64,000 bases of DNA from Macrostomum lignano (GCA_002269645.1 NIVC01003722.1:16578-80577), one strand, 5' to 3'; positions 8,293 through 35,739 are shown, counted from the stretch's first letter. The notes: generated by a model from the letters alone, not told the origin. Numbers and translations: made by a program.

Positions 8293-8329
<37 letters not shown>

Positions 8330-8596: not shown

Positions 8597-8633
<37 letters not shown>

Positions 8634-12965: not shown

Positions 12966-13221
12966 CGCTGCGGTGCAGAGTCCGGTCTATTAACTACTTG
13001 GGAAAGTCTGAAGATAATTGTTGGGTGTCTATGTGAGCTTTGGAGACCGTAGCTTAGTCAGTTGGGGGGGGGGGAGTTTCGCTTATTGCTGAGCATAATT
13101 TCCGCTTACCTTGTGTCCAGGTGACAAGAACCTCTTGAGCCTGCTTGGGTGAAGTCTATTAATAGCTGACCTGAAGCAACGACGCCCGTCGAAGCGGTTC
13201 GTTTCCCTGCTTATAGCCAAC

Positions 13222-13275
13222 TATTTATAAAGGTAGCGGAACTCCCTGGTTGAGTGGAGTCTGAGCCAATCAGAT
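13222..13275 (-). promoter_or_regulatory. TATA box (TATAAATA, minus strand 13229-13222) with a nearby CCAAT box
   Basis: Consensus TATAAATAG upstream of the candidate secreted-peptide gene; GCCAATCAG near 13265-13273. Confidence 0.45.
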
Positions 13276-13695
13276 GCTGAGGCTGCATGGGAGTTAGCGT
13301 TTTTATTATTACGATCCAATCCATTAAATTGCTACATCATTGGCTGCATCACGGACGCACTGCAACGAGTCAAAGCCAGCAGAGGACCTGGAGTTCCTGA
13401 ACTCGTTTCTAGGCGTTGTCGCATTAATTTTAGGTGGAGCTCCCAGAGACTAAGAAGTAATTGAGTTTCTGAGGTGAGGCAATGAACGAAGTGCTCTGTC
13501 TGCGTATTAGAGGTCTCTGTCTGTCTGTGTGCTTGGGCGTTGCAAGGACTTCTCTCAATGAATAGGATTAAATGATTACATTCATAGCTCCCTGGTGGTA
13601 AATGCTAACCTGAACCAAGCACAGTGAAAATTTTTAATGATAAAAGCATTAAAATTTCCTCAAAATTTGCTAATGCGTTTTAGGTAAAAAAATCG

Positions 13696-13864
<169 letters not shown>

Positions 13865-14169
13865 GATTTTCTGTTCGCGAAGTACGTAACGGCGATCTGG
13901 TTGAAGACAGCTACATTGTAGGCCAACCCCCAATTACGCGACTATTATTTTTAGCAAGACTCCTTTAGCAGCGGTTCGCTATTATACTGCCAACAGTGCT
14001 CACTGCTCAGCATTCAATTATACTCTATGGGATTGATATTACTGCAAATGTCCGTGAGACTTTACTAATGGTAGTAGCATTCCCAGCAACTGCCTAAACG
14101 GAGTCCTGCATCTACTCGTGACTTTTGTTTGAGCTGCTTATAGCTGCTCTTGTAACGCCTGTTTCTCCT

Positions 14170-14392
14170 GTAACAGCCTCCCGTCACTTCTCAGTCTGTC
14201 ACATCATTCCGTCACTTCTCATGCTGTCACATCATTCCGTCACTTCTCAGTCTGTCACATCATTCCGTCACTTCTCAGGCTGTCACATCATTCCGTCACT
14301 TCTCAGTCTGTCACATTATTCCGTCACTTCTCAGTCTGTCACATCATTCCGTCACTTCTCAGTCTGTCACATCATTCCTTCACTTCTAGTCA
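14170..14392. repeat. About 28-bp minisatellite (CTTCTCAGTCTGTCACATCATTCCGTCA)n
   Basis: Unit read directly. Confidence 0.88.
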
Positions 14393-14661
14393 CTTTGTTA
14401 AAATTACTCTTAAGTATTTTTGGAATAAAAAAGCGCAACTGAAAACTTATCAAGTTATTTGCCAGCTTAAATAGTTATAGAGATAGAGAGCGTCTGCTAA
14501 ATAGATTTAAGATAAAGAGATGGCGCACAAAATAAGAGCTGTGACAATTCCAATGATCAACTGATCGTGCCCTAAAATTAAGTCATATTAATTATTTTTT
14601 CTCTGCTAGCTGCATGTCAAGCGCAGTCAAATCCATCACTAGCTGGTCCCTGACTCGCCGG

Positions 14662-17521
14662 CTAATACGTTGGACACCAGCTAGAAGCGTTCTTGACCGC
14701 GGTGACAAAAATCAGCAGCAAGACGGCCACAGAGCAGCTGACGGAGCAGATTATCAGCAGGCGGTCAATCGCTGAGCCAATCTGCTGCCACTCGGATCCC
14801 GGACTGGTTTTGATTGTTGTCATGGAAACCGACTCGAGCGATTGGGCTTGGTTGCTCTCCTTGCAGTTCTCAACGCTTTGCTGCAAAAATTGTGCGACAG
14901 TTGCTAACTGCATCCGAGTGAGTTATTAAAGACTCAGAACTTTATGCTCACCACAGTGTTCTTCCAGCCGCACAGGCGGTTGAGGAACAGCAGCCTCAGC
15001 ACTGGGCTGCTCACAGCCTCCCGCGATGCAGCTCTCCTGTAGCACAGGTGCACAACTATGCTGCCGATTGTGCTCAGAGCGGTCACAGCCATGGCCACCG
15101 TGAAGTACCAGGCTGGGGATGGGCAGAGACAGACTTGGCTCAGTGTAGCTGCATAGCACAGCACAGCACAGCACAGCACAGCACAATACAGCACAGCACA
15201 GCACAGCACAGCACAGCACAATACAGCACAGTACAGCACAGCACAGCACAGCACAGCACAGCACAGCACAACACAGCACAGCACAGCACAGCACAGCACA
15301 GCACAGCACAGCACAGCACACATCAATAGCCATACACTCTGACTCACTGAGCACTGGAACAGACTCGCTCTGAGCAGGGGTGATGCTGCCCGCCAGCTGC
15401 AGGAACACACTCATTGACAGCAGGATGGCCACATTCAGTGCCAGTCGGTCGCCCGAGTCCGCTGGCAGGAGAAAGCCGAAGATGCAGGTGGCGAGGATGA
15501 GGGCGCTGGGGATGATGAGCACGATGACGTAGTAGAGGGGCCGCCTCTGCAAAGGGATGGGGAGCGGGAGACTGAGCGGGCACTTAATGCCGAGCCTCGG
15601 GGACCTTTATATACGAGTATCTAGTTTCTATCTCACCTTGAAGCTGACAGTGATATTCACTATGTCGTGTTGTCCCATCTTACTATTCCAGGATGTATTG
15701 ACATTGGTGACGCAGAATTCATTATTTTGGCTAGCAGTCACGACAATCTGCTGGTCATTGGGTCTTGGTAAAGCCTTCAGCCTGATGTATTTACTACCCT
15801 TCGCTACTGAGGACAGGTAGATTGAGCAGTGCTGGGAGTCGAACGGGAAATCGTTCAGCTTCATCTTGCACTTGTTGGTTGTGCCGTAGGACAGCAGTGC
15901 CGTGACCTGGCCATTCGCGAGCACCTTCGCTAGCAGCCTGTTCTTCTCGAAGCTGCGAATGTCGATGCTATGAGAGAGGTTGAGTAGCTTTTAAGTGAGT
16001 TGGTGTCAAAAGTGCAATAATCATCGTATACTTTTTTATAAGCTTTAGTGAATCATATTTGAGTTAGTAGCCAGCCAAAGATCATGAAAGATACATCGCT
16101 TCATATCTTTTTACTTATCATTATAAGTAAAGTACCAGTCAGAGGTTTGAATTATAAGCCGCAAAAACACCAAATATTTCTAATACTGAATACCACGGAC
16201 AACTAAAGCAACGTACAGGACGCGACACTGTACGAGCTAAATCTATACAAAATGTTTTGAAGGCCACTGTTCGCCGAGAAATACACTATGTAGATAGAAA
16301 GTTTTCATTTTTTCAGCTCAAAAATTGTTATTGCTTTCAATAGGAGGCAGACCCAATGCTCATCTTTGAGTTGTCCTTGGCTTACTGTGTAACAATATGT
16401 GTAACAGAAATGATAAAATAGATGCATACGAGCTAAAACTAAAGATTCGAGCCGTGCCATGCATTTTAATGATTTTTTAGGTACAGGAAATGTACGTAGA
16501 ATATGAAATTAACATAGAATCCCAATTTTCCGAACAAAGAGCTTTACGAATATCAATAGAGATCTTATCCAAAGATGAGCATTGCGTCTGCCTCCTATCG
16601 AAAGCAATAACAATTTTTATGCTGAAAAAAGAGAACTTCCTATCTCCGTAGTTCTACCATGTCCTTCTACTTTAGTAGTCCTTGCTGAATACTACTTTCG
16701 ATTGTTGGCAATTCAGTAGTATCGACTAATTTTGAATCAATTTTTATCAGGAGCGAATCTGGTGATTGGCCAGTTGTGCCGTCTGAACGGATTTTGCAAT
16801 GGTTCGCTCCTTCATCCAACGTGGAGCTGTGGGATTTCGAGGAGTTTGAGACGCGATCCCGGACGAGAAGAGAAGATAAGAGCAACTTTTGCACTTGAGC
16901 TATGGAGCTAATAAACTGAAATCTGATGTCGCACTCACGGCCTCATCACAATGACATCCGGCACCCAAATCATGTCGAGTGGCAGGAAGATTTCGTCAGT
17001 TGTCAGCAGCTCAGCATTGCCCGACCTGTCCCAGGCCAGTCTCCTGTCAGTCCATTGCTTGGGGGCGGAAGAGTTACAAAGGTTTTTTTCAGCATGAATG
17101 TAACATCAATATTTCTAATAACTCATCAAGCTTACCAGCATTATGTAGCTGTCAAGAGAAAACAACTGCTTCACATCATTCTGGAACAGCACAAGATGGA
17201 GCATCGTTATCGGACAGGGGTTAATTGAATTAGCGCTAGCGCTACATCACTATTTTTGGACATCTATGGTATTTACTGGTGCCAACTCACCACTTCAAGC
17301 AGCTCGTTGACAAGGCAGTCCACAGTAACCAAGGTAGCGGTGCCATTGTCCTGCGGCGGAGCCGCCTCCTTGCAGTACCTGGCGGTCAGGTTCAGCCATC
17401 GGATCACCTGCTCCTCTCCAGATGCCGCTTCTTCTGTTTGAGAATGCACTCCTGATGACAGCAAGACGAGCACTGCTACGCAGAGTCTGCAGCAGAGGTC
17501 TGAGTATTGTTGAGTCCGCAT
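14662..17521 (-). CDS. Divergent nAChR-like Cys-loop ligand-gated ion channel subunit, copy A (443 aa, non-alpha type)
   Basis: Seven exons: 17521-17291, 17180-17136 (the 45-bp exon typical of nAChR genes), 17057-16939 (WTDRRLAW...WVPD), 15967-15637 (Cys-loop CKMKLNDFPFDSQHC), 15546-15348 (M1-M2, SGDRLALNVAILLSMSVF), 15112-14952 (M3), 14907-14662 (EW..I...IDRL, M4). Total 1332 nt in frame, all GT-AG. Confidence 0.9.
15153..15321. repeat. (CAGCA)n microsatellite in intron 5 of channel copy A
   Basis: Pentamer run read directly. Confidence 0.95.
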
Positions 17522-19187
17522 CGATCTATTCGGGTAGGAGCGCAGGCTCACACAGCAGTATTTGCCAAGTATCACAGCGCCAGACTGCTAGCAGTTCACC
17601 AAACTAAGTAAGCAGAGCATGAACTGATGTAGACAAGCCTCTTATATATACATACTAGAGCAAATGCAGCCTTTTGCTATAACCAATAAGCTGATTGCGA
17701 TTGCTGAGCTGAGTGAATGCGACGCTGATAAAGCAGTTGGTGGCATATTGGCCTGCCGTTTCCCCGACTCACTTTGCTCAGCGACTGCAAGGCTTTAATT
17801 AACAGTCACGACAGTTAAACCAAGCACTGAGCAGAGCACACAAAGGGCCGGGTTAGCATGGTGCTCAAATATTGAATTAGTAGAAGCTATCGCTGGGAAG
17901 CTTCAGAGTTGAATTTGTTTAAGCTGTGAGCAAGCGAAGTGACCATGGCAACATTTTTCGAGAAAGTGAACTTTCCGGTGCCCTTGCAGTTCACTGCCTA
18001 ACGGATGAGAAAGTCAGGGCCGCTGTACACCCAGTGTGAGCGAGTGCGTAATCCGTATATGTACTTGGCAGCGGCCAAGGTACTCAACTTGAAGCAGACT
18101 AGAGTAAGTTCAGCTGCGCGCCACTTCAATTCGGCGACTCAAACTTTAATTAATGAGAGTCCGTGCAGCTTATCAACTTTCGTGCTGTCGTCCGTCAGAC
18201 ACATGGGTTTGATTCCGAGAAGAACAGTTAGTTTTCTGAGTTGCTTCAACTATTGGATATTGTTCAGAGTTGCCTAATTAGATTCTATTAACTCGGCTCT
18301 CTTCGTCACTGATGCACCGAATCAATTTGCTTAAGTGCTACTCAATTGTTTGCTTCCAGCCACCTAGCCAGTGCCCCGGCCGTATTGTCATGCAATTGTC
18401 CAATTTGTCAACTCTAGCTGTTCATCAAATATTATCCGTAAGAGTGCGTGACACTTACGGTGTGGTTTGTGACCGGTCGGATGTTCTTTCTCTCCGGCCT
18501 CCGTCGCGCCCCGTCTCCGTCTCTCTGGCGCACCCACCTCCCCCCGATCTGGCTTTAAGGCCTTCTTCTCGCGTTGATTTGCCTCCCCTTTGTCTGTTTG
18601 CAGGGACTGCTAAAAATAGCATCACTGTGGTGCCAGCTCTAGAAGTCCCTGGCGATCCCTTGTAGGTGTTCGCGTCTGGCTTCTTTCGTGCTCTGACTGT
18701 GGAGTTAATGAAACCATTTATACTTCCGGCTCAGTACCATCTTCATTTTAATAAGCTCCCGTCTCAAACTCACTGCACTTACATGTAATAGACACATGGA
18801 AAGCTAAACCTTGACTATATCAGTATCGTAAGATCTAATCGAATGAGGAATTCTGAAGCTAATGTTTTTCACTAATATAGGTACAAGTAAAACCCACGAT
18901 GCCCTCAACTCCGGAGGTAATTACATCAGTCCGAAAGATTCAGTCTTCAGTTGTCTTGAAACAAGTGCAATGCGTCAAAATGATTATTATAGTTTAACAA
19001 GATAAAATATAGTTGTAATATATATCTGCTGCGGCAGTTTGGTTAACTGGCCTATTGGTTCAATAATTAGCTGCTAGTGTTGGCTGCTGGAGTATTGCAC
19101 GGTACACAGCTGATGTGTTAGTTTATTAAGGAGTTAGTTTAGTAGGCCTTAAACTCGAATTGATGAGCTCGGTCATCAGCATCCCGC

Positions 19188-22100
19188 CTAGTTGCTCTTG
19201 TTAGCGGTGGCGCCCAGCAGCACGGTGACGGCCACGGAGAGGCTCACAACGCAGACCAGCATCAGTCTGTCCAGCACGCAGCTCACATGCAGCCACTCGT
19301 CTCCAGGATCGCGGCAGCCGTCCTGGACGCTGGCGAGGCTGCTGCTGGATGATGAGGCGGCCGCGGCCTTCGATGTGGCGCTGCTGACTCGGTAATTCTG
19401 GCGAAAAATGAGAGCAATTTAAAGATTCGACAAGCTGTCAGCAGATAAAGTAAGAGCAACGTCGGAAAATCTAAGTACATATGAGAGAGCACGCACCGAC
19501 CAGCCGCACAGGCGGTTGAGGAACAACAGCCTCAGCACTGGGCTGCTCACAGCCTCCCGCGATGCAGCTCTCCTGTAGCACAGGTGCACAACTATGCTGC
19601 CGATTGTGCTCAGAGCGGTCACAGCCATGGCCACCGTGAAGTACCAGGCTGGGGATGGGCAGAGACAGGCTTGGCTCAGTGTAGCTGCACAACACAGCAC
19701 AGCACAGTACACCACAGCATAGCACAGCACAGCACAGCATAGCACAGCACAGCACAGCACAGCACAGCACAGCACAGCACAGCACAGCACAGCACAGCAC
19801 AGCACAGCACAGCACAGCACACAGCCCAGCACAGCACAGCACAGCACAGCACAACACAGCACAGCACAGCACAGCACAGCACAGCACAGCACAATACAGC
19901 ACAGCACAGCACAGCACAGCACAGCACAGCACAGCACAATACAGCACAGCACAGCACAGCACAGCACAGCACAGTACAGTACAGCACAATACAGCACAGC
20001 ACAGCACAGCACAGCACAGCACAGCACAGCACAGCACAGCACAGCACAGCACAACACAGCCCAGCACAGCACAGCACAGCACAGCACAACACAGCACAGC
20101 ACAGCACAGCACAGCACAGCACAGCACAATACAGCACAGCACAGCACAGCACAGCACAGCACAGCACAGCACAATACAGCACAGCACAGCACAGCACAGC
20201 ACAGCACAGTACAGTACAGCACAATACAGCACAGCACAGCACAGCACAGCACAGCACAGTACAGCACAGTACAGTACAGCACAGCACACATCAATAGCCA
20301 TACACTCTGACTCACTGAGCACGGGAACGGACTCGCTCTGAGCAGGAGTGATGCTGCCCGCCAGCTGCAGGAACACACTCATTGACAGCAGGATGGCCAC
20401 ATTCAGTGCCAGTCGGTCGCCCGAGTCCGCTGGTAGGAGAAAGCCGAAGATGCAGGTGGCGAGGATGAGGGCGCTGGGGATGATGAGCACGATGATGTAG
20501 TAGAGGGGCCGCCTCTGCAATGGGATGGGGAGCGGGAGGCTGAGCGGGTAGTCAGAACAGAGACTGCTGTGCAATGAGTGAGTACCCAGCACCTCTCAAA
20601 CATGCGGTATCTTACCTCGAATTCAACTGTAACCAAAAGCTTCTTGAATTGGGGAAATTGGGTGCTGAAGTCAATAATGACTGAGCGCACACTAGTAACA
20701 CAGTACTCATTGTTCTGCAGGTTTATCTCGCTGTAGTTGATAGGCAGCCCACTTTTTATCTCAAGCTGCAAAAGCGTCTGCTTCTTCGCCGCTGACGAGA
20801 AAGAAAACTGGCAAACTTGCGTGTCAAATGGAAAGTCGCGCATCTTCAGCGGGCACTTGATGGTTATGCCGAGCGGCGTTTCCAGTTTCATCCTACCGTT
20901 CGAGCTCACGTCAACCAAGAATTTGTTGGTTTCAAAGCTTTTGACGTCAACCCTGTCAAAATATTTACGAGAGTATTTGATAAAAGACTGGGCTGTCTAT
21001 GGCCGAGTGCAGTTCTGTGGCAGTGGCTTTGGTTGGCTTCATTGTCTATGGCCGAGTGCAGCTCTGTGGCAGTGGCTTTGGTTGGCTTTATTGTCAATGG
21101 CCGAGTGCAGTTCTGTGGCAGTGGCTTTGGTTGGCTTCATTGTCTATGGCCGAGTGCAGTTCTGTGGCAGTGGCTTTGGTTGGCTTCATTGTCTATGGCC
21201 GAGTGCAGCTCTGTGGCAGTGGCTTTGGTTGGCTTCATTGTCTATGGCCGAGTGCAGCTCTGTGGCAGTGGCTTTGGTTGGCTTTATTGTCAATGGCCGA
21301 GTGCAGTTCTGTGGCAGTGGCTTTGGTTGGCTTTATTGTCTATGGCCGAGTGCAGCTCTGTGGCAGTGGCTTTGGTTGGCTTTATTGTCTATGGCCGAGT
21401 GCAGCTCTGTGGCAGTGGCTTTGGTTGGCTTTATTGTCTATGGCCGAGTGCAGCTCTGTGGCAGTGGCTTTGGTTGGCTTTATTGTCTATGGCCGAGTGC
21501 AGCTCTGTGGCAGTGGCTTTGATAGGCTTTATTGTCTATGGCCGAGTGCAGTTCTGTGGCAGTGGCTTTGGTTGGCTTTATTGTCTATGGCCGAGTGCAG
21601 TTCTGTGGCAGTGGCTTTGGTTGGCTTTATTGTCTATGGCCGAGTGCAGCTCTGTGGCAGTGGCTTTGGTTGGCTTTATTGTCTATGGCCGAGTGCAGTT
21701 CTGTGGCAGTGACTTTGGTTGGCTTTATTGTCTATGGCCGAGTGCAGTTCTGTGGCAGTGGCTTTGGTTGGCTTTATTGTCTATGGCCGAGTGCAGCTCT
21801 GTGGCAGTGGCTTTGGTTGGCTTTATTGTCTATGGCCGAGTGCAGCTCTGTGGCAGTGGCTTTGATAGGCTTTTTTGATAGGCTGCAGCGAAAGGGGACT
21901 CTCCACCTGATCGGCTTTATTATCAACCAATATAAAAATCAATGCCATATTAAATTGGCAAACAGAACTCACGGATGGCTCAGACTCAAGTCCGGAAGCC
22001 ACACATAGTCTGTTGGTAGAAAGATCTTCTCAAACTTGGCCAGTTTGGGATCGTCGGTCTCGTTCCAGGCGAGTCGCAAATCCGTCCAAAACTGAAAATT

Positions 22101-22613
22101 CAGAGTTGTTCGAGGGCGGCCGAGGCAGGTGTTGCGGTAGATGTGCAGCTGCTACTCATTCAGGTAACTTAAAGGTGGATTATCTAGGAGTCAAACTCAC
22201 CATCATTATCCAGAGATCCAAGGACACTAGCTGATTCACAACATCCTACAAAGCGTTTTTTCAGGCTGATTTAACTGCTTTTAAACCGATTACAGTGGCT
22301 ATCGCATTTTTGAGTAAAAGTTTGAGCAAAAACCTGTAAGTTTGGGGAGTTAAAATAAGATATACAATACTGCACCCTCAGTGGCACTCACCACGCTGCT
22401 GATTCTGATGAGTTTAGTTCTAAACTTGATTACATTGGCCGTGCCGTTGTCTGGCGGAGGTGCCGCCACCTTGTAGTAGCCGGAGGTGATGTTCAGCAGC
22501 CGGATGATCCTCTCTTCGGTTGACATCCTGGAAGGCTCCTTCGCCGAGCAGACGGCGGCCTGGAGGACCAGCAACGTCAATGTCAACGCCAGAATAATCC
22601 CCTGTCTCAGCAT
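19188..22613 (-). CDS. Divergent nAChR-like Cys-loop channel subunit, copy B (427 aa)
   Basis: Exons 22613-22392, 22245-22201, 22091-21973, 20952-20616 (CPLKMRDFPFDTQVC), 20514-20316, 19648-19497, 19397-19188 (EWLHVSCVLDRL). Total 1284 nt in frame. Confidence 0.9.
19686..20289. repeat. (CAGCA)n microsatellite in intron 5 of channel copy B
   Basis: About 600-bp pentamer run. Confidence 0.95.
20993..21870. repeat. 49-bp minisatellite in intron 3 of copy B
   Basis: Unit TCTATGGCCGAGTGCAGCTCTGTGGCAGTGGCTTTGGTTGGCTTTATTG. Confidence 0.93.
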
Positions 22614-23084
22614 TGCTCACTGGCTGAATTCAGCTGTGCTAATCCGGTGATCTTCATCGAATCCCCCGATGGTTTTATTCGTTAAATATTTCCCACAGGG
22701 GAGAACCACTTTGGGAAATTGCTGAATTAGATTCTGACAACTACCCGGCTCTCTAATTGACTGTAGTGCAGCTGAGAGAGCATCCCGTAAATAGGTTATC
22801 GTCTAAGTCAATTTGATGGATTGGCAAGCATTGTTTGCTTTCAGCATTATCCTCTGCCTTTTTAGCCACCAATCAAACCCAATTTACTCGTCGTAATGCA
22901 AATTTGCGAATTTTCGTTGACCAGCAAATGTCTGCTGAGCAAACTTTTCGCTACAATAGACACTAAGTCCATTAAAGGCTCGTTAATCAAAGGTCCATTA
23001 TTGGTACTGATAAAAATTGGAGGTTGCGACAGACACGGAATGGGCGGAGACAGGCTTGGCTCAGTGTAGCTTTTTTGTTACCAA

Positions 23085-23320
23085 TGTGTTTTTTTGGTTA
23101 AAAAGCACATCGGTAACAGAACGGGAGGTTAAAAAGCACATTGGTAACAGAACGGGAGGTTAAAAAGTACATTGGTAACAGAACGGGAGGTTAAAAAGCA
23201 CATCGGTAACAGAACTGGAGGTTAAAACAGACACATTGGTAACAGAACGGGAGGTTAAAAAGCACATTGGTAACAGAACGGGAGGTTAAAAAGCACATTG
23301 GTAACAGAACGGGAGGTTGA
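23085..23320. repeat. 31-bp minisatellite (AAAAAGCACATTGGTAACAGAACGGGAGGTT)n
   Basis: Unit read directly. Confidence 0.88.
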
Positions 23321-23474
23321 GCTTGGGACACCTACACCTACACAAGGGACACCTTGGGACAACTGCGAAGGGACACAATATTATTACTATACAAGTGAGT
23401 CGATAAATTATTGTTTAAATTACGACTCGAATGACAGCTGCTCTCACAATATTTGAATTAATAAATAGCTATTG

Positions 23475-24120
23475 ACTCATTGGTACACAGCCATTGGCTC
23501 ATTGGTACATAGACAAAAGTTCTTTGGTACACAGCCATTGGCTCATTGGTACACAGACAAATAGTTCTTTGGTACACAGTCATTGGCTCATTAATATACA
23601 GACAAAAGTTCTTTGGTACACAGCCATTGGCTCATTAATATACAGACAAAAGTTCTTTGGTACACAGCCATTGGCTCATTGGTACACAGACAAAAGTTCT
23701 TTGGTACACAGTAATTGGCTCATTGGTACACAGACAAAAGTTCTTTGGTACACAGTAATTGGCTCATTGGTACACAGACAAATAGTTCTTTGGTACACAG
23801 CCATTGGCTCATTGGTACACAGTTATTGGCTCATTGGCACACACTTATTGGCTCATTGGTACACAGACAAATAGTTCTTTGGTACACAGCCATTGGCTCA
23901 TTGGTACACAGTTATTGGCTCATTGGTACACAGTTATTGGCTCATTGGTACACAGACAAATAGTTCTTTGGTACACAGCCATTGGCTCATTGGTACACAG
24001 TTATTGGCTCATTGGCACACACTTATTGGCTCATTGGTACACAGACAAAAAGTTCTTTGGTACACAGCCATTGGCTCATTGGTACACAGCCATTGGCTCA
24101 TTGGTACACAGTTATTGGCT
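23475..24120. repeat. Compound minisatellite (TTGGCTCATTGGTACACAG core)
   Basis: Repeated core with variable tails. Confidence 0.88.
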
Positions 24121-24206
24121 CGTTTAAAAACAGTTATAATTTTATGATGCCATTCAGATGATTTTGCTAGTGTGTCACGTTTAGTAAGAGGTCGGTGTCA
24201 AATCCA

Positions 24207-27200
24207 TCAGCAAGCTACAAAGCCGCTATTAGCAGCTGTGACGAAAAGCAGCCCGCCAACAGCTGCAGCGGACAGGACAGCGCAGGCAATCAGCAGCCGG
24301 TCCACTGCAGAGCCGATGTGACGCCACGCATCCGCGGGGTCGCTGCCTTGAAAACCGCACAGGCGGTTGAGGAACAGCAGCCTCAGCACTGGGCTGCTCA
24401 CAGCCTCCCGCGATGCAGCTCTCCTGTAGCACAGGTGCACAACTATGCTGCCGATTGTGCTCAGAGCGGTCACAGCCATGGCCACCGTAAAGTACCAGGC
24501 TGGGGATGGGCAGAGACAGGCTTGGCTCAGTGTAGCTGCACAGCACAGCACATTACAGCACAGCACAGCACAGCACAGCACAGCCCAGCACAACACAGCA
24601 CAGCACAGCACAGCACAGCGCAGCACAGCACAGCACAGCACAGCACAGCACAGCACAGTACAGCACAGTACAGCACAGCACAGCACAGCACAGCACAGCA
24701 CAGCACAGCACAGCACAGCACAGCACAGCACAGCACAGCACAGCACAGCACAGCACACATCAATAGCCATACACTCTGACTCACTGAGCACTGGAACGGA
24801 CTCGCTCTGAGCAGGAGTGATGCTGCCCGCCAGCTGCAGGAACACACTCATTGACAGCAGGATGGCCACATTCAGTGCCAGTCGGTCGCCCGAGTCCGCT
24901 GGCAGGAGAAAGCCGAAGATGCAGGTGGCGAGGATGAGGGCGCTGGGGATGATGAGCACGATGATGTAGTAGAGGGGCCGCCTCTGCAAAGGGGTGGGGT
25001 GCGGGAGGCTGAGCGGGCACTCAGCACAGAGACTGCTGTGCAATGGGGTGGGGAGCGGGAGGCTGAGCGGGCACTCAGCACAGAGACTGCTGTGCAATGG
25101 AGTGGGGAGTGGGAGGCTGAGCGGGCACTTAGCACAGAGACTGCTGTGCAATGGGGTGGGGAGCGGGAGGCTGAGCGGGCACTTAGCACAGAGACTGCTG
25201 TGCAATGGGGTGGGGAGTGAGAGGCTGAGTGATGCAGCTGGTAAAGCACAGATGTTCAACTCATCTGCTACTTGCCTTGAAGCTGATTGAAACCTGAACT
25301 TTTTCGTAATATTCATAGATAGATACTTTTGAAGTTTCGATGTGGCTGATGCAGAATTCGTTGCTCTCCTTGTTAAGATCGGCATAGGTTTTGTTTGCCT
25401 CCTGTCCCAATTCAAGCTGCAAATCCGCAGGCGTTTTCACAGCCGAGGAGAAGGTTGCGTTGCACTGCTGGGAGTCGAAGGGAAAATACGCCATGTTCAT
25501 CGGACACCTGCTGGTTACTCCGTATGGAATGCCGATTATTACAGTTCCACTTTGGTAGACAATAGACAAGTGTTTATTGGCCTCATAATTGCGGATTTCG
25601 ACTCTGCGTTGCAGGAGTAGGTATTGATCTGTGTTCGCCACAATGACAAGGCATTGCTTTTAAAGTTACATGATACATGCACATCTACATGATACATGCA
25701 CATCTACATGATACATGCACATCTACATGATACATGCAAAACTACATGATACATGCACATCTACGTGATACATGCACAGCTACATGATACACATCCGCAA
25801 CTACATGATACACATAAACAGTTACATGATACACATACGCAACTACCGGTACATGATACACATACACAGTTACATGATACACTTACACAACTACATGAAA
25901 CACATACAGAACTACATGTTACTCATACGAAACCCTAAAACACAACCACAGTTAGTTACATGATACACATATACAGTTAAATAATACACATACACAGCTA
26001 CATGATACACATACGCAACTACATGATACACATATACAGTTACATAATACACATACGCAACTAAATGATACACATACACAGTTACATGATACACATACGC
26101 AACTACATGATACACATAAACAGTTACATGATACACACACGCAACTACATGATAAACATATACAGTTACATGATGCATGAACTTACGGGTGGTCCACGGT
26201 CACATCGGGCAGCCACAGCCAATCAGTCGGCACGAAGATTTTCTCAACCTTGGCTAAGCTTTCATCGCTTGTGTCATTCCAGGCTAATCGGGCATCTGTC
26301 CATCTCTGAATAATTTTTTTTATTAATGGCACATTGCTATGCTCGTAACTGCATATGAGATTTGATTGAGCTGAGATGCATATGACATTTGGTTGACCTG
26401 AGATGCATATGACATTTGGTTGAGCTGAGATACATATGAGATTTGAATGAGCTGAGATGCATATGAGATTCGATTGAGCTGAGATACATATGAGATTTGA
26501 TTGAGACGAGATACCTATGAGATTTGATTGAGCTGAAATACCTATGAGATTTGATTGAGGTGAGATACCTATGAGAGTTGATTGAGGTGAGATACCTATG
26601 AGAGTTGATTGAGGTGAGATACCTATGAGAGTTGATTGAGGTGAGATACCTATGAGAGTTGATTGAGGTGAGATACCTATGAGATTTGATTGAGGTGAGA
26701 TACCTATGAGATTTGATTGAGGTGAGATACCTATGAGAGTTGATTGAGCTGAGATGCATATGAGATTTGGTTGACCTGAGGTGCATATGAGATTCGATTG
26801 AGCTGAGATGCATATGAGATTTGATTGAGGTGAGATACCTATGAGAGTTGATTGAGCTGAGATACCTATGAGAGTTGATTGAGGTGAGATACCTATGAGA
26901 TTTGATTGAGCTGGGGTGCACACACTGAGATGTAAACGATGGCTTACCAGTATCATCCAGAGGTCAATGGACACTTGCTGTTTCACAATATCCTGAATGG
27001 CAGCAGCAACAGCTTTATTACACAAAGGTAGAGTTGAGCACAAGATGCACAAGCTGCACTCACCACGCTGCTCAATCGAACAACTTTAATGGACACAATG
27101 ACAACATTCGCTGTGCCATTGTCTGGAGGCGGCGCCGCGCCCTTGCAGTAGCCGGAGGTGAGGTTCAGCAGCTCGACAATTCTCTCCTGGTTGGACTTCC

Positions 27201-27294
27201 TGGATTGCCCGGCCGAAGTCAGAACCCAAGCGAGCGCGAGCAGCATTTGCAGCAGGCCGGCTGCCCGGTGAGTCAGTGCTCGAGGAGGCTTCAT
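24207..27294 (-). CDS. Divergent nAChR-like Cys-loop channel subunit, copy C (404 aa, 6 exons)
   Basis: Exons 27294-27064, 26992-26948, 26305-26187, 25603-25276 (CPMNMAYFPFDSQQC; GC donor AAG|GCAAGT), 24983-24785, 24499-24207 (M3 and M4 in one exon). Total 1215 nt in frame. Confidence 0.87.
24538..24758. repeat. (CAGCA)n microsatellite in intron 5 of copy C
   Basis: Pentamer run. Confidence 0.95.
24995..25230. repeat. 54-bp tandem duplication (about 4 units) of the intron 4 acceptor region of copy C
   Basis: Unit GCTGAGCGGGCACTCAGCACAGAGACTGCTGTGCAATGGGGTGGGGAGCGGGAG. A single related unit lies in copy B intron 4. Confidence 0.88.
25660..26175. repeat. About 21-bp minisatellite (ACATGATACACATACGCAACT)n
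   Basis: Intron 3 of copy C. Confidence 0.88.
26350..26915. repeat. 27-bp minisatellite (GAGATTTGATTGAGGTGAGATACCTAT)n
   Basis: Intron 2 of copy C. Confidence 0.9.
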
Positions 27295-27555
27295 CAGCGA
27301 GGCTGGACTAATTCCGGGCTCCAGTGCTGCAGAATAAACTATTAATATTCATAGCCAGTTATCAGTTAGCAAGCAGTCAGACAGTTTGGCTCCATAAAAA
27401 ATTGCGCAAATACAGAGAGGGGGGGCTCATTTGATTTGGCTGATCAGCATCTGAGCTGGGCTTAAGTAATTAATCCAGCAGTTCTGTTTGCCGAATAATA
27501 ACAATGCTCAGACACGCACGCAAACATCCTGAGTTTGTTGACTTTAGACAGTTGG

Positions 27556-28078
27556 AATCATTAGCATCGTTAGCACCATTAGCACTATTAGCATCATTAG
27601 CACCATTAGCACTATTAGCATCATTAGCACCATTAGCATCATTAGCATCAATAGCATCATTAGCATCATTAGCATCATTAGCACCATTAGCACCATTAGC
27701 ACCATTAGCACTATTAGCATCATTAGCACCATTAGCACTATTAGCATCATTAGCACCATTAGCACTATTAGCATCATTAGCACCATTAGCATCATTAGCA
27801 TCGTTAGCACCATTAGCACCATTAGCACTATTAGCATCATTAGCATCAATAGCATCATTAGCATCATTAGCATCATTAGCACCATTAGCACCATTAGCAT
27901 CAATAGCACCATTAGCATTATTAGCATCATTAGCATCAATAGCATCATTAGCATCATTAGCATCATTAGCACCATTAGCACCATTAGCATCAATAGCATC
28001 ATTAGCATCATTAGCACCATTAGCACCATTAGCATCAATAGCATAATCAGCATAATCAGCATCATTAGCACCATTAGC
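27556..28078. repeat. 9-bp repeat (GCATCATTA/GCACCATTA)n
   Basis: Unit read directly. It explains the ANGAND / LASLAP / MLMLM ORFs. Confidence 0.93.
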
Positions 28079-28845
28079 ACTGGAAACCATTGACATGACA
28101 TGGCCACTAGTATTACTATAAACTAACATCAGCTCAGGTTTGTTAGTTTTACTTCTGCAATGTCGATCATAAATTTTGTAGGATGAGCAAAAATAACTCG
28201 ACCTCTGTGTCCGTTTGAAGCTCGTTGCAACTCAAAAGTCAATCGACATATTCTGGACACTCACCTGGCTGGCTCTACATCAACTGCGATCACGACAGCG
28301 ACAGCGCCTTTTTTAAGGGCCTTCCCATCAAGAAGCTGGAAGCGATCGATACTTTCATCTTCATCGTCCGTTTTTGTGATCGGCTCGTGACCTTCAACAC
28401 CGACATCACCGCCGTTTTCGGGATGGTCGGGCGTGTTAAATCCGGATGCTCATGCGGTCGGCGCTGCATCACAACATCCGATTCAGTGCCCAGGCAGTAC
28501 CAAATTCTCGCTAATCTCGTCTCGACCTGTGTCCGTTTGAAGCTCATTGAAACTCAAAAGTCTTCGCGCCTCAAGGTGTCAGCTGTTTGCGTTTCAAAGA
28601 TGGCTCTTTTTCGGGGCGATCGTTGCGATCGGAGCGGCTTTCCTTCTCAAGAGCCACTCTTGCGATCTTTGCGCACTTCCCTCTTCTCCCGATGTGTATG
28701 GCAAAATTCCAGTAGTTGAAAAGTTGTGGATTTAATGTTTAAAAAAACTGAAAACTTCAAATCTTGCCAATGCAGTTGGCAGCTGGAATCGGCCTGCAAC
28801 AAAATCCGCACGATTTGCGGCGGCCTTCTGCTTCATTTTTTTTAG

Positions 28846-29262
28846 GATTCGAACCTGAGACTATGATAAGGTGAGGTAAGCAGCATTCGAACCAAGGACC
28901 ATTATAGGATGCAATAAGCAGGATTCGAACCTAGGACAATTTTGGAACTCACTAAGTAGGATTCGAACCTAGGACTATTATAGGATCAACTATATGGATT
29001 CGAACCTAGGACTATTATAGGATCAACTATATGGATTCGAACCTAGGACTATTATAGGATCAACTATATGGATTCAAAACTAGGACTATTATAGGATCAA
29101 CTATACGGATTCGAACCTAGGACTATTATAAGATCAACTATATGGATTCGAACCTAGGACTATTATAGGATCAACTATATGGATTCGAACCTAGGACTAT
29201 TATAGGATCAACCATATGGATTCGAACCTAGGACCATTAAAGGACTCACTAAGATTCAAACC
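28846..29262 (-). repeat. 37-bp minisatellite carrying a Pol III B-box (GGTTCGAATCC on the minus strand) in most units
   Basis: Top-strand unit GGATTCGAACCTAGGACTATTATAGGATCAACTATAT; about 12 copies of the motif, most perfect. Confidence 0.85.
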
Positions 29263-29429
29263 TAAAACTACTGGGAGAGTTTATTTCCTATAGCATATCA
29301 GGAAAATTAATAAATATCCAGATAATATCGATGACAGAGGATTATTAGAAAGATGCAGCTTCATAGAACAGAGGAGCTCAGTAAGCAGGCGTCAGCGATC
29401 AGGCACGGTGTCCGATGATTGAGCCGGAA

Positions 29430-32400
29430 TCAGAATTCAGAAAATCTTATTTTTCTCAAAGCGGGCTCGCAGTCGCCGCTCCCCGCCGCGGTGAGAGCCA
29501 GACAGATCAGAATGCCAGCTGAAGCAACGATCGCGCCGAAGGCCAGCAGCCGATCGATGATGCGACCGATTTGACGCCACTCGGCAGTTTCCATGGAAGT
29601 CGTTGCTGGGGCGACGCTCGTTTGCTTGCCGACCTGGTCAGCCCAGGCGGAGTCGTCATCGGCCTGCTTTGGGGCGGAATGAAATGCTCAGGTGAAAATT
29701 TAGAGGCAGGCATGGGGCTCGAACTCAGGAGCTCCAGACAGAGTACACATCAGATTTAGGAAGTCAGAACCATTGCCATGTAAAAGTCCAGAATCTCTGC
29801 TAATTAATCTAAAATGCGCTAAATAACAAATTTACAAGCAGAACTCTTAGCTCGTCTCACCACAGTGTTCTTCCAGCCGCACAGGCGGTTGAGGAACAGC
29901 AGCCTCAGCACTGGGTTGCTCACAGCCTCCCGCGATGCAGCTCTCCTGTAGCACAGGTGCACAACTATGCTGCCGATTGTGCTCAGAGCGGTCACAGCCA
30001 TGGCCACCGTGAAGTACCAGGCTGGGGATGGGCAGAGACAGGCTTGACTCAGTGTAGCTGCATAGCACAGCACAGCACAGCACAGCACAGCACAGCACAG
30101 CACAGCACAGCACAGCACAGCACAATACAGCACAGCACAGCACAGCACAGCACAGCACAGCACAATACAGCACAGCACAGCACACCACAGCACAGCACAG
30201 CACAGCACTGCACACATCAATAGCCATACACTTGGACTCACTGAGCACTGGAACAGACTCGCTCTGAGCAGGAGTGATGCTGCCCGCCAGCTGCAGGAAC
30301 ACACTCATTGACAGCAGGATGGCCACATTCAGTGCCAGTCGGTCGCCCGAGTCCGCTGGCAGGAGAAAGCCGAAGATGCAGGTGGCGAGGATGAGGGCGC
30401 TGGGGATGATGAGCACTATGACGTAGTACATCGGCAGTCTCTGGAGTGTTGAGTGTAAATATTTGGCCAGAAATTGAAACAAAATATTTGCGTTATAACA
30501 ATGCAGTCGTCAGTCAACTAAAAGTCTGTACCTTAAAAGTAATGATAACCTCCATCTGGTGGTAACTAGAATAGACCCATTTCAGAATCGAGTCAACGGC
30601 AGTGACGCAGTACTCGTTGCTGCGGAGAAACCGAATCGATAGGTCAATAGCGATGCTTCGCACCACTCTGAGCCGCAGCGAATTGGGCGGTCTCTGGCCC
30701 GAGGCCATGCTGAAATTGCACTGCTGTTTGTCAAACGGAAAGCTGGCCAGCTGCATGTTGCATTTTTTTGTTAAGCCGAATGCCAGCTTGGTTTGCACCT
30801 GACCGTCTGAGCTGATCTCGGCTAGCAGTTTGCTCTGATCGTGGTTGCGAATCTCCACACTGGAAATGTTCAGGCTATGGTTGTGAAGTTCGGGCACAAG
30901 GAAAATAAGGATACTCGTAGAAGTGCAGGAGAGATAAGGATAGGAATACAGGTGAGATAAAAAAGGATAGGAATAAAGGTGAGATAAGGCTAGGAATACA
31001 GGTGAGATAAGGATAGGAATACAGGTGAGATAAGGCTAGGAATACAGGTGAGATAAGGATAGGAATACAGGTGAGATAAGGATAGGAATACAGGTGATAT
31101 AAGGCTAGGAATACAGGTGGGATAAGGATAGGAATACAGGTGAGATAAGGATAGGAATACAGGTGAGATAAGGCTAGGAATACAGGTGAGATAAAAAGGA
31201 TAGGAATAAAGGTGAGATAAGGCTAGGAATACAGGTGAGATAAGGATAGGAATACAGGTGAGATAAGGATAGGAATACAGGTGAGATATGGATAGGAATA
31301 CAGGTGAGATAAGGATAGGAATACAGGTGAGATAAGGATAGGTATACAGGTGAGATAAGGCTAGGAATACAGGTGAGATATGGATATAAATACAGGTGAG
31401 ATAAGGATAGGAATACAGGTGAGATAAGGATAGGAATACAGGTGAGATAAGGCTAGGAATACAGGTGAGATAAGGAGAGGAATACAGGTGAGATATGGAT
31501 AGGAATACAGGTGAGATAAGGAGAGGAATACAGGTGAGATAAGGATAGGAATACAGGTGAGATAAGGATAGGTATACAGGTGAGATAAGGCTAGGAATAC
31601 AGGTGAGATATGGATATAAATACAGGTGAGATAAGGATAGGAATACAGGTGAGATAAGGATAGGAATACAGGCGAGATAAGGCTAGGAATACAGGTGAGA
31701 TAAGGAGAGGAATACAGGTGAGATATGGATAGGAATACAGGTGAGATAAGGCTAGGAATACAGGTGAGATAAGGAGAGGAATACAGGTGAGATATGGATA
31801 GGAATACAGGTGAGATAAGGATAGGAATACAGGTGAGATAAGGATAGGTATACAGGTGAGATAAGGCTAGGAATACAGGTGAGATATGGATATAAATACA
31901 GGTGAGATAAGGATAGGAATACAGGTGAGATAAGGATAGGAATACAGGCGAGATAAGGCTAGGAATACAGGTGAGATAAGGAGAGGAATACAGGTGAGAT
32001 ATGGATAGGAATACAGGTGAGATAAGGCTAGGAATACAGGTGAGATAAGGAGAGGAATACAGGTGAGATATGGATAGGAATACAGGTGAGATAAGGATAG
32101 GAATACAGGTGAGATAAGGATAGGTATACAGGTGAGATAAGGCTAGGAATACAGGTGAGATATGGATATAAATACAGGTGAGATAAGGATAGGAATACAG
32201 ATGAGAAAAGGATATAGGAACACTCGGAAATAAAGATACGAGTAGAAACACAAAAATTAGTATTGAATAAGAAGTCAATAAAGAATCCCAGCCGTGCGAT
32301 GTGTGAAAGTTGATGGCATAAATTACAAGCGGCACCCACCAATGTCTGACACAGTCTCCAAAGTGGATTTAATTATAAGCCGCACCATTTTAAAGTAAAG

Positions 32401-34403
32401 TGTCTTTAAAGTGTCTGTCAAGCCGCATGGGTGGTCAAATATTGCTAATGGATGCCCAGAGCCTGTCAGTTTTAGACACCATTCGGAGCAAATAGATAAG
32501 TAGGATAGTTATCAAACTCACGGCTGGCTAACGCTGATGTCAGGTGTCCACAGCCAATCCAGAGGCGCGTAGATGGCGCCAACTGCGGCCAGTTCCGGTC
32601 TGGCGATTCCTTTCCAGGCTAGTCGGGGGTCTGTCCAGTTCTGTTGTATTGACATCAGTGTGGCAGAAATGATTGATGAGTCAACACGTTGGCTTTGGAG
32701 TGAGGCTGCGGGTTGGAAGGTTGTCCCAAGGTTGATGCAAATAGATCGATGAGGAAGGTGTATGCTTGTATGTGTGCTTGGAAGTAACGAGAAGGCTGTG
32801 TTTGGGAAGTGAGGCTGGCATGGGAGTCAGGGGGAGAGGGTGGTATGAGAGTCAGGGGTGAGCTTTGTGGCATAAGAGTCAGGGGGAGAGGGTGGTATGA
32901 GAGTCAGGGGTGAGCTTTGTGGCATAAGAGTCAGGGGGAGAGGGTGGTATGAGAGTCAGGGGTGAGGTTTGTGGCATAAGAGTCAGGGGGAGAGGGTGGT
33001 ATGAGAGTCAGGGGTGAGGTTTGTGGCATAAGAGTCAGGGGGAGAGGGTGGTATGAGAGTCAGGGGTGAGGTTTGTGGCATAAGAGTCAGGGGGAGAGGG
33101 TGGTATGAGAGTCAGGGGTGAGGTTTGTGGCATAAGAGTCAGGGGGAGAGGGTGGTATGAGAGTCAGGGGTGAGGTTTGTGGCATAAGAGTCAGGGGGAG
33201 AGGGTGGTATGAGAGTCAGGGGTGAGGTTTGTGGCATGAGAGTCAGGGGTGAGGTTTGTGGCATGAGAGTCAGGGGATGAGGCTTGTGGCATGAGAGTCA
33301 GGGGTGAGGCTTGTAGCATGAGAGTCAGGGAGTGAGGCTTGTGGCATGAGAGTCAGGGATTGTGAGGGTGGCATAAGAGTCAGGGGTGAGGGTGGCATGA
33401 GAGTCAGGGATTGTGAGGGTGGCATGAGAGTCAGGGATTGTGAGGGTGGCATGAGAGTCAGGGATTGTGAGGGTGGCATGAGAGTCAGGGGGTGAGGTGG
33501 CATGAGAGTCAGGGATTGTGAGGGTGGCATGAGAGTCAGGGGGTGAGGTGGCATGAGAGTCAGGGGTGAGGGTGGCATGAGAGTCAGGGATTGTGAGGGT
33601 GGCACGAGAGTCAGGGGTGAGGGTGGCATGAGAGTCAGAGAGTGAGGTGGCATGAGAGTCAGGGGTGAGGGTGGCATGAGAGTCAGGGGTGAGGGTGGCA
33701 CGAGAGTCATGGGTGGTGGTTGGCATGAGAGTCAGAGAGTGAGGTGGCATGAGAGTCAGGGGTGAGGGTGGCACGAGAGTCATGGGTGGTGGTTGGCATG
33801 AGAGTCAGGGGTGAGGGTGGCATGAGAGTCAGGGGTGAGGGTGGCACGAGAGTCATGGGTGGTGGTTGGCATGAGAGTCAGAGAGTGAGGTGGCATGAGA
33901 GTCAGGGGTGAGGGTGGCACGAGAGTCATGGGTGGTGGTTGGCATGAAAGTCAGGGGTGAGGGTGGCATGAGAGTCAGGGGTGAGGGTGGCACGAGAGTC
34001 ATGGGTGGTGGTTGGCATGAGAGTCAGAGAGTGAGGTGGCATGAGAGTCAGTGCATGTTTAACAGACTGCTTACCATGGAAACTCTGTTCTCCAGCACAA
34101 TGAACTGCTTGACCATGTCCTGTAAAGAGCACAAATAAATTAACAAATGAGAATGCGATGATTTAGCGCAAATCCGGACAAACCGGCTCTACTTACGACA
34201 TCAATGAGCTTGACTATCTCAATCATGATGGTCACAACGACGGCCGTGCCATTGATCGGTCTCGGACTGGCGCCTTTGACATAGCCGCCGTTGGTGAGAT
34301 TCAGCATCCGGATGATCTGCTCATCGACAGACGCGTCATCGGCGACAGGTTCCGCCGCATTGGTTGCTAGGAGCAGCTGTGCTAAAATCCCTGCCAGTAG
34401 CAT
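29430..34403 (-). CDS. Divergent nAChR-like Cys-loop channel subunit, copy D (about 430 aa)
   Basis: Exons 34403-34197, 34119-34075, 32640-32522, 30859-30532 (CNMQLASFPFDKQQC), 30440-30242, 30021-29861, 29663-29430 (AEWRQIGRIIDRL). Total 1293 nt in frame. Confidence 0.9.
30061..30208. repeat. (CAGCA)n microsatellite in intron 5 of copy D
   Basis: Pentamer run. Confidence 0.95.
30930..32205. repeat. 23-bp minisatellite (AGGATAGGAATACAGGTGAGATA)n
   Basis: Intron 3 of copy D. Confidence 0.93.
32815..34050. repeat. G-rich minisatellite of about 24 bp (GAGAGTCAGGGGTGAGGGTGGCAT)n
   Basis: Intron 2 of copy D. The same family occurs at 39385-39775. Confidence 0.9.
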
Positions 34404-34870: not shown

Positions 34871-35739
34871 CAGCGGCGTCGCCACCGAAAAGGGGGACAG
34901 GGGGACATGCCCCCCAGTAAAAGCTATGAGAGGACATACCAATGCTTTGTCCCACCACCCAACCTTGTGAGCCGTTATGGAAATCAATAATTTTGCTTCA
35001 GGACGAAAATCTATAGCGCCTACGGCAAAAAAATGAGTGCCTGCGGCGCCAAAGTGAGTGCCTGTGGCGCTAAAATAAGTGCCTGCGGCGCTAAAATGAG
35101 TGTCTGCGGCGCTAAAATAAGTGCCTGCGGCGCTAAAATGAGTGCCTGTGGTGCCCAAATGAATGTCTGCGGCGCCAAAATGAGTGACTGCGGCGCCAAA
35201 GTGAGTGCCTGCGGCGCCAAAGTGAGATCTTGCGGCACGAAAATGAGTGCTTGTGGTGCCCAAATGAGTGTCTGCGGCGCCAAAATGAGTGACTGCGGCG
35301 CCAAAGTGAGATCTTGCGGCGCCAAAATGAGTGTCTGCGGCGCCAAAATGAGTGTCTGCGGCGCCAAAATGAGTGTCTGCGGCGCCAAAATGAGTGTCTG
35401 CGGCGCCAAAATGAGTGACTGTGGCGCCAAAGTGAGATCTTGCGGCGCCAAAGTGAGAGCCTGTGGCACCAAAATGAGTGACTGCGGCGCCAAAGTGAGA
35501 GCCTGCGGCGCCAAAATGAGTGACTGTGGCGCCAAAACGAGTGACTGTGGCGCCAAAATGAGTGCCTGCGGCGCCAAAAAGAGTGTCTGCGGCGCCGAAA
35601 AGAGTGCCTGCAGCGCTAAAAAGAGTGCCTGCGGCGCCAAAATGAGCGCTGACAACAGTGATGCTGAAAATAATGTACATGCAATATGTGGAATTCTCGG
35701 CTTTGTCCCCCTACCATAAAATCCATGGCGGCGCCCCTG
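34871..35739. mobile_element. hAT-like MITE, copy 1, with expanded internal 21-bp repeat
   Basis: Ends CAGCGGCGTCGCCA ... TGGCGGCGCCCCTG (imperfect TIR). 8-bp flanks GCCTGGAT/GCCTGTAT match 7/8. Shares its body with 52074-52401. Confidence 0.75.

Follow-up and report, generated by a model that had tools for sequence, protein, structure and literature searches.

Lophotrochozoan animals carry massive expansions of genes resembling nicotinic acetylcholine receptor (nAChR) subunits, most of them orphans, and the survey that described these expansions was made without flatworms (Jiao et al. 2019). The chemotactile receptors (CRs) of octopus and squid belong to the same broad kind: they are nAChR-like pentameric cation channels of demonstrated function that do not use the signature residues of acetylcholine (ACh) binding. 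A 64-kb stretch of DNA from the flatworm species Macrostomum lignano (GCA_002269645.1, NIVC01003722.1:16578-80577; 64,000 nucleotides, here called the window, with positions counted from its first letter) contains four intact tandem Cys-loop receptor genes, A to D, spanning 14662-34403 on the minus strand. Their products are probably orphan non-cholinergic ligand-gated cation channel subunits, of a clade seen so far only in M. lignano. The cluster adds to the lineage-specific orphan nicotinic-like subunits already described, and its noteworthy feature is the conversion of the cassette that encodes the pore.

Four tandem receptor genes

The spliced models, made from splice-site reading and comparison of the paralogues, have six or seven exons per gene and no internal stops. 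The introns are GT-AG throughout, the sole exception being one GC-AG donor in gene C, and the order of the genes in the direction of transcription is D, C, B, A.

Gene A, 434 aa: 14662..17521, minus strand; exons 17521-17291, 17180-17136, 17057-16939, 15967-15637, 15546-15348, 15112-14952, 14880-14662; splice model and identical GenBank protein
Gene B, 427 aa: 19188..22613, minus strand; exons 22613-22392, 22245-22201, 22091-21973, 20952-20616, 20514-20316, 19648-19497, 19397-19188; splice model and Pfam
Gene C, 404 aa: 24207..27294, minus strand; exons 27294-27064, 26992-26948, 26305-26187, 25603-25276 (GC donor), 24983-24785, 24499-24207; splice model and Pfam
Gene D, 430 aa: 29430..34403, minus strand; exons 34403-34197, 34119-34075, 32640-32522, 30859-30532, 30440-30242, 30021-29861, 29663-29430; splice model and Pfam

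A first-pass annotation had placed the cluster at 15637-34403. The right end of that interval holds, but its left end is the 3' end of the gene A Cys-loop exon, and the stop of gene A lies at 14662. The intergenic spacers measure 1.6-2.1 kb, and tblastn across the window found no further gene copy or fragment outside the four. All four proteins match Pfam Neur_chan_LBD (E 1e-26 to 1e-34) and Neur_chan_memb (E 1e-16 to 1e-18), and M4 was identified in the last exon of each gene, completing the four transmembrane helices of the Cys-loop superfamily. In gene C, a single exon holds M3 through M4 and the M3-M4 loop is very short.

Two exons of the extracellular part are central to the reading of the pocket.

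45-bp microexons (beta2 strand, loop D), minus strand: A 17136-17180, B 22201-22245, C 26948-26992, D 34075-34119; the sole in-frame AG...GT 45-mers that fit the paralogue pattern
Exon 4 (loop E, Cys-loop, loops B, F and C), minus strand: A 15637-15967, B 20616-20952, C 25276-25603, D 30532-30859

The AG/GT-flanked microexons encode NDVKQLFSLDSYIML (A), DVVNQLVSLDLWIMM (B), DIVKQQVSIDLWMIL (C) and DMVKQFIVLENRVSM (D), which align with DEKNQVLTTNIWLQM of alpha7, and exon 4 is 30-36% identical between paralogues. Phase-0 introns flank the 45-bp exon and a phase-2 intron follows loop A, so that the ancestral nAChR gene layout is present in all four genes. Canonical nAChR exons at these positions measure 45 bp and 110 bp; exon 3 of A to D has 119 nt, ends in phase 2 and aligns with the end of the 110-nt exon, its surplus of 9 nt being a 3-residue insertion seen in the alignment. 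The 5-HT3 genes are believed to have the same exon layout, which may therefore not separate 5-HT3 from nAChR genes. In vertebrates, the first introns are common to all nAChR genes (PMC6354393).

The model of gene A is residue-for-residue identical with GenBank PAA50078.1/PAA53391.1/PAA73977.1 (BOX15_Mlig024351g3/g4). The GenBank annotation of M. lignano derives purely from whole-animal RNA-seq transcript assemblies, so gene A is transcribed, and its splicing, with the 45-bp exon, is that of the model. The UniRef models of gene B (P0001, P0193) are partial or faulty and come from another copy of the locus, the sole database model of gene D is a frameshifted UniRef entry (P0003), and no protein of gene C appeared in any protein search made; three of the four genes are thus absent from public protein sets or wrong in them. 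Automated gene models of the family (A to D; UniRef A0A1I8GLY6, A0A1I8JJA8, A0A1I8JJA1 and others) systematically omit the 45-bp loop D exon and often fuse adjacent tandem genes of the family into proteins of 900-1800 aa, once together with a C-type lectin domain. Surveys of pocket residues would be misled by such lost microexons and fusions.

Positions 4662-27521 of the window match contig NIVC01003722.1 of the assembly (Mlig_3_7) at 100% identity. Two more copies of the locus, on contigs NIVC01000984.1 (L001) and NIVC01003094.1 (L003), are 93-99% identical and carry A, B and C intact. Compared over window positions 12672-27600, the coding sequences of these two are near-identical to each other and 1-3% off the window copy. 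At least three copies of the locus are present in the assembly, and a 165-kb contig adds a fourth gene A model, which is truncated (PAA57153.1); this multiplicity fits the duplicated chromosomes reported for the DV1 line. In L001, intron 3 of gene A is larger by ∼1.7 kb. Gene A has no amino-acid changes in the further copies, and the ratio of non-synonymous to synonymous divergence (dN/dS) in the extracellular domain (ECD) is 0.19-0.38 for B and C, with only 6 non-synonymous and 7-8 synonymous ECD changes between homeologous copies. Between paralogues, ECD dN/dS is 0.2-0.35 at a saturated synonymous divergence (dS) of 1.4-2.9, and because of this saturation the ratio is at best an underestimate of constraint. 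The reading frames are intact and constrained: frames that stay open over such synonymous divergence, with A, B and C intact elsewhere, are not a chance pattern.

Divergent pockets on a homogenised pore

The pocket residues were read from an alignment to human alpha7.

Loop D (alpha7 W55): A Tyr, B Trp, C Trp, D Arg
Loop A (alpha7 Y93): A Met, B Ser, C Asp, D Ser
Loop B (alpha7 G-S-W149): A SSV, B SSA, C SSA, D ASG
Loop C (alpha7 Y188): A gap, B Thr, C gap, D gap
Loop C (alpha7 Y195): A His, B Phe, C Tyr, D Tyr

The alignment bears out the earlier description of loops A, B and D and of the missing YxCC motif. Relative to alpha7, loop C is short by 3 to 5 residues, and the YxCC vicinal Cys pair is absent from all four subunits; of the five positions of the aromatic box (loop A Tyr, loop B Trp, both loop C Tyr, loop D Trp) A and D keep one, B and C two. 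The Cys-loop, as had also been claimed, is retained four times out of four as C-x13-C with FPFD, namely CKMKLNDFPFDSQHC (A), CPLKMRDFPFDTQVC (B), CPMNMAYFPFDSQQC (C) and CNMQLASFPFDKQQC (D), and so is the 45-bp exon. Neither the box nor YxCC, the marks of an ACh-gated nicotinic receptor, is intact in A to D. The loop B Trp described as highly conserved in 5-HT3A (W183/184) occupies the same column as alpha7 W149, where A to D have Val, Ala, Ala and Gly. Compared with a non-alpha subunit, the absent Cys pair fits, while the loop D Trp occurs only in B and C and the loop B Trp in none. The pocket has also acquired basic residues: the alpha7 Y151 column holds Lys in A, B and C and Arg in D, gene D has a further Arg at loop D, and loop E contains Lys in A, B and D. 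They would fit a move away from cationic ligands, although this is speculation.

The cation-pi pocket for ACh and 5-HT is gone in all four subunits and has been dismantled differently in each paralogue. From their residues, A to D are unlikely to respond to ACh or 5-HT by way of the classical loop-B cation-pi mechanism, and with that mechanism lost another ligand or stimulus would gate them. Such a loss is not rare. Among the 176 closest receptor units, 116 have the loop-B Trp and 46 have no loop-B aromatic, 78 keep two or fewer of the five box aromatics, and only 59 have the Cys pair; labelled examples of signature loss come from bivalves, a gastropod, nematodes, a tardigrade, and 5-HT3-like genes of fish and frog. 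Since it is widespread among nAChR/5-HT3-like orphans, loss of the ACh signature is not a specific pointer to chemoreception.

Beneath these pockets the pore is the same. Aligned to alpha7 M2, the M2 region reads PADSGDRLALNVAILLSMSVFLQLAGS in all four genes, with a cytoplasmic end of PADSGDR where alpha7 has PADSGEK. It has the signature of a cation channel: Asp at -4' and -1', no -2' Pro insertion (the motif is not PAR), Leu at 9' and Val at 13'. The elements of gating are kept as well (Cys-loop FPFD, pre-M1 Arg, the 'SESVP' stretch between M2 and M3, 9' Leu), and the M3-M4 loop measures ∼40-80 aa. On these motifs, A to D are predicted to conduct cations.

Sameness of the pore extends to the DNA. 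Across the four genes, nucleotide identity is 94-99% in exon 5 (M1-M2), in intron 5 and in exon 6 over its initial ∼146-165 nt (M3 and post-M3), and in A to C the last ∼40-60 nt of intron 4 are near-identical too.

Gene-conversion tract (blastn identity), minus strand: A 14947-15584, B 19500-20576, C 24355-25045, D 29856-30443
(GCACA)n microsatellite filling intron 5 (Tandem Repeats Finder): A 15151-15320 (34 copies), B 19687-20288 (120), C 24538-24757 (44), D 30060-30214 (31)

The tracts are roughly 0.6-1.1 kb long and include the (GCACA)n repeat of intron 5 in each gene. By blastn there is almost no DNA similarity outside them, and the other exons are 44-80% identical between genes. Paralogue dS is 0.04-0.09 in the pore cassette versus 1.4-2.9 in the ECD, and amino-acid identity is 97-100% versus 36-48%. 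The GC content at third codon positions is 0.78-0.81 in the cassette versus 0.61-0.68 in the ECD, an increase expected under GC-biased conversion. The homeologous copy of gene B carries I248V and S343N, which are the states of paralogues A and D. Gene conversion, or repeated replacement of the cassette, has acted on these genes and is restricted to the pore cassette. Purifying selection alone was considered as the cause of the identical pore exons and rejected, because the intron, flanks and synonymous sites are homogenised too; the conserved pore is largely a product of gene conversion. An assembly artefact was likewise rejected, given the single-nucleotide and microsatellite-length differences, the unique flanks, and the same cassette in UniRef models and homeologous contigs. 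In intron 4 of gene C (24985-25229), 4.5 tandem copies of a 54-bp unit duplicate the intron's 3' end together with the acceptor region ahead of the pore exon, and so place spare acceptor-like sites upstream of exon 5.

This conversion, which the first-pass annotation did not contain, makes the cluster a clean natural example of domain-restricted concerted evolution, with a dS of ∼0.05 in the pore and above 1.4 in the binding domain of the same genes. In the proposed scheme, A to D would be subunits of pentameric ligand-gated cation channels of the nAChR/5-HT3 branch. Non-reciprocal exchange keeps the M1-M3 cassette and its intron near-identical, and the ligand-binding domains and M4 have diverged beyond recognition at the DNA level. 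Each paralogue would present a different pocket on one common pore. A shared pore should ease co-assembly into heteromers. The mosaic suggests either a benefit of the common cassette for co-assembly or mere tolerance of conversion in this part of the genes.

Relationships, candidate roles and surroundings

An exhaustive HMMER search with gene A against 1.84 billion representative proteins returned 7558 relatives; the query, P0002, is the UniRef model of gene A without the microexon and also served for structure prediction. The only close relatives are other M. lignano proteins, at 30-36% identity (44-61% for short or partial models), several of them tandem arrays fused into a single annotated protein. 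The next matches, at 30% identity or less, are from an annelid, bivalves, nematodes, a hemichordate, a chiton, a nemertean, a brachiopod and vertebrate 5-HT3-like proteins, and no schistosome protein is among the taxon-labelled closest matches. Membership of the schistosome 'Cys-less' ligand-gated ion channel (LGIC) clade was rejected, as A to D have both Cys-loop cysteines.

Neighbour-joining trees were built from 176-192 receptor units, CRT1, CRB1, Alpo4 and ZAC not being among these units. The proposed tandem paralogy stands, A to D being monophyletic on the ECD alone (96% bootstrap), and they fall within a clade of 11 units that contains M. lignano sequences only (97-98% bootstrap). In a tree rooted on a frog 5-HT3, this clade stands at distances of 1.7-2.0 from each of alpha7, alpha9, insect alpha subunits and a frog 5-HT3, and it attaches near the base, where enclosing nodes have 46-68% support and deep branching is weak. 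Against the PDB, a profile of the four proteins scores 162.7 bits with 5-HT3A, 159 with alpha7 and 158 with beta2; the best 60 matches are all alpha7, 5-HT3A and other nAChR chains, with no CR, Alpo4 or ZAC chain among them.

The clade is marked by four signatures.

'PPPDNG(T/N/S)AN' before beta1; variants 'SPRPINGTAV' in gene D and 'PPPDYNTTN' in the sister A0A1I8G5P5
In beta9, a conserved Cys within '(N/D/H)E(F/Y)C' (alpha7: 'GEWD')
A short loop C
Absence of the loop-B Trp, save in A0A1I8G5P5, which keeps GSW

Their sequences place A to D in the cationic nAChR/5-HT3 branch of Cys-loop receptors and in no named non-alpha nAChR type. In the trees they fall outside the ordinary non-alpha nAChR subunits; nesting there would have spoken against the first-pass annotation. 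Its term 'nAChR derivative' is too specific, given the profile scores and the weak deep branching, and nAChR/5-HT3-type is the better description. Its suggestion of an origin independent of the cephalopod CRs agrees with the M. lignano-only clade; common descent with the CR clade is not supported in these trees, from which the CR sequences themselves are absent.

That the four genes encode orphan non-cholinergic cation channel subunits is the preferred reading, and several observations weigh against it. The loop D Trp kept in B and C could give the complementary face to a cholinergic site with an alpha-type partner. Cation selectivity is read from motifs, and the outer 20' ring is Ser instead of Glu. 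Transcript-based annotation exists for gene A only, B and C being unannotated in the GenBank record of the fetched loci, and word-indexed protein searches, which gave few matches (4, 33 and 2), yielded no GenBank entry for B, C or D; low expression or repeat filtering could explain the missing annotation of B to D. The AlphaFold2 model of P0002 (27-sequence alignment) has a confident transmembrane domain and an ECD with a mean predicted local distance difference test score of 69.6, several ECD blocks falling to 37-55, so the pocket is not readable from it. The retained Trp also enters a wider argument, distinctly unlikely to be right, that A to D are accessory non-alpha ('beta-like') subunits co-assembling with a canonical alpha in ACh-gated receptors, at the complementary face or in the fifth position. 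Every non-alpha subunit lacks the loop-C Cys pair, as do all four products, loop D is Trp in B and C and Tyr in A, and the family profile scores beta2 as high as alpha7. The P0002 model, poor as it is, has a generic nAChR/5-HT3A fold in Foldseek (TM 0.43-0.47) with muscle non-alpha chains and alpha7 as best matches. However, none of the four has the loop-B Trp, which 116 of the 176 closest units possess, the M. lignano sister P0020 among them. Gene D carries Arg in place of the loop-D Trp, the loop-E positions vary from copy to copy, the M. lignano-only clade does not group with any named beta, delta, gamma or epsilon type, and four binding domains 36-48% identical are hard to square with a purely structural role. 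It is very improbable that the genes are duplicates in decay or without function, in a genome that is highly duplicated and rich in repeats. Extensive genome redundancy and the annotation gaps of B, C and D would suit decay, but four complete open reading frames (ORFs) with correct splice signals persist despite saturated synonymous divergence, the structural hallmarks are all conserved, the ECD dN/dS is as low as given above, and two other copies of the locus preserve A, B and C intact, their synonymous changes outnumbering the non-synonymous ones.

For orphan non-cholinergic subunits, the question becomes what they sense. The first-pass annotation proposed a chemosensory role, which is plausible by analogy and which nothing here contradicts. 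In its fuller form, in which the genes are environmental chemoreceptors of peripheral sensory cells and an independent, flatworm-specific recruitment analogous to the cephalopod CRs, the proposal has some standing and is on balance doubtful. It would account for an ACh pocket that is lost and different in every paralogue, for divergent binding domains over a constant pore, as in CRs, and for a tandem cluster within an M. lignano-only expansion of at least 11 distinct units less than 50% identical, several of them in other tandem arrays. The very short M3-M4 loop would argue against synaptic scaffolding, and the absence of B to D from a transcriptome-based annotation fits expression in few cells, among other explanations. 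But the same signature loss is common in orphans of many phyla, where the roles proposed are developmental, immune or stress-related. Positive selection is not evident, the paralogue dS being saturated and the homeologues differing by so few ECD changes, and a constant pore that stems from gene conversion is not itself evidence of selection focused on the pocket. In a rough division of roles, the largest share goes to an internal receptor for a non-ACh transmitter, metabolite or ion and a comparable one to an environmental chemoreceptor, a smaller share goes to an accessory subunit of cholinergic receptors, and other roles take the rest. A still bolder version, and a rather unlikely one, is a Macrostomum chemoreceptor family on a modular plan, in which conversion would keep M1-M3 fit for any mixture of subunits while the ligand-binding domains, shielded from it, diversify. 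If true, a neurotransmitter-receptor scaffold would have been turned into a sensory family for a second time, convergently, and in a phylum about whose chemoreceptors little is known. Sensing of non-ACh ligands, if true, would place a flatworm case beside the ionotropic receptors derived from ionotropic glutamate receptors, the CRs derived from nAChRs, and the amine-, betaine- and proton-gated LGICs of nematodes. M. lignano is transgenic-ready and therefore a workable test system.

Around the cluster, minisatellites are unusually dense. They fill introns and spacers from 14000 to 35800 and beyond, with periods of 9-89 bp and lengths of up to 1.3 kb, and produce many long spurious ORFs; their density agrees with the 15% of simple and tandem repeats reported for the M. 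lignano genome. The remaining features of the window are listed here.

Minisatellite examples: 20994-21877, 23467-24121, 26354-26913, 27557-28079, 30926-32214, 32816-34051, 35030-35646, 40130-41144, 463-1575
7733-8731, plus strand: long Pro/Gln-rich low-complexity ORF inside a GenBank-called plus-strand gene (814-aa product, extending past the fetched locus)
41083-46252, minus strand: apparently intact LINE-type retrotransposon lacking long terminal repeats (non-LTR), with a 1236-aa ORF holding endonuclease, reverse transcriptase and RNase H domains
51352-52008, plus strand: single-exon Rab-like small GTPase of 218 aa ending in CCQ (Pfam Ras, E 2e-53)
53106-57905, minus strand: ORFs resembling exons of one gene, of which 55423-56004 matches Pfam ANAPC5 (anaphase-promoting complex subunit 5; E 8e-6)
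62619-63672, plus strand: retroelement integrase fragment at the right end of the window (Pfam rve, below gathering score)

Upstream of the 1236-aa ORF of the LINE element, the ORFs at 44787-45740 and 45737-46252 may be its ORF1.

Likeness to described systems

The solved structures nearest to A to D in sequence, and thus their reference points, are human alpha7 and 5-HT3A, with which they share the fold, the Cys-loop, well-conserved M1-M3 helices, a cation-type M2 end (PADSG-E/D-K/R) and the 9' Leu; the layout of the alpha7 gene also agrees with theirs in its 45-bp exon and in having a phase-2 intron behind loop A. Identity is nevertheless only ∼22-30%, the loop between M3 and M4 has ∼40-80 aa in A to D and well over 100 in the two references, position 20' is Glu in the references and Ser in A to D, and the loop-C disulfide is missing from A to D.

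Nearer at hand, the M. lignano proteins A0A1I8JJA1, A0A1I8GX25, A0A1I8GVX6, A0A1I8IAP1 and A0A1I8G5P5 share the clade signatures, several of them standing in other tandem arrays. They are 30-36% identical to A to D and have Glu at -1' (PPECGER), except A0A1I8G5P5, which has Asp as A to D do. The pore modules of these family members are similar to each other but not near-identical, unlike those of A to D. The -1' Asp also recurs in the schistosome subunits Smp_012000 and Smp_337330 (GDR/SDR before M2), a likeness drawn from motif descriptions only.

Alpo4 of Alvinella and the bivalve expansions (Jiao et al. 2019) resemble A to D in being lineage-specific, often tandem orphans that lack the loop-C Cys pair. 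Alpo4 retains its aromatic cage (F103, W159, Y199, Y205, W65), which A to D do not, and the molluscan expansions are largely intronless retrocopies, whereas A to D keep 5-6 introns, including the ancient microexon.

A further parallel is with the cephalopod CRs (octopus CRT1, squid CRB1), and A to D are predicted to be channels of that same non-ACh kind. Both are lineage-specific multi-gene expansions in which the pockets diverge on a conserved channel core. A pore kept by gene conversion, as in A to D, has no counterpart in the accounts found in the CR literature, and the CRs have a demonstrated function whereas that of A to D is predicted from sequence. The pockets have also taken different directions: that of CRT1 is aromatic and hydrophobic (Y58, W122, F124, F192), whereas A to D combine Val, Ala or Gly at loop B with basic residues.

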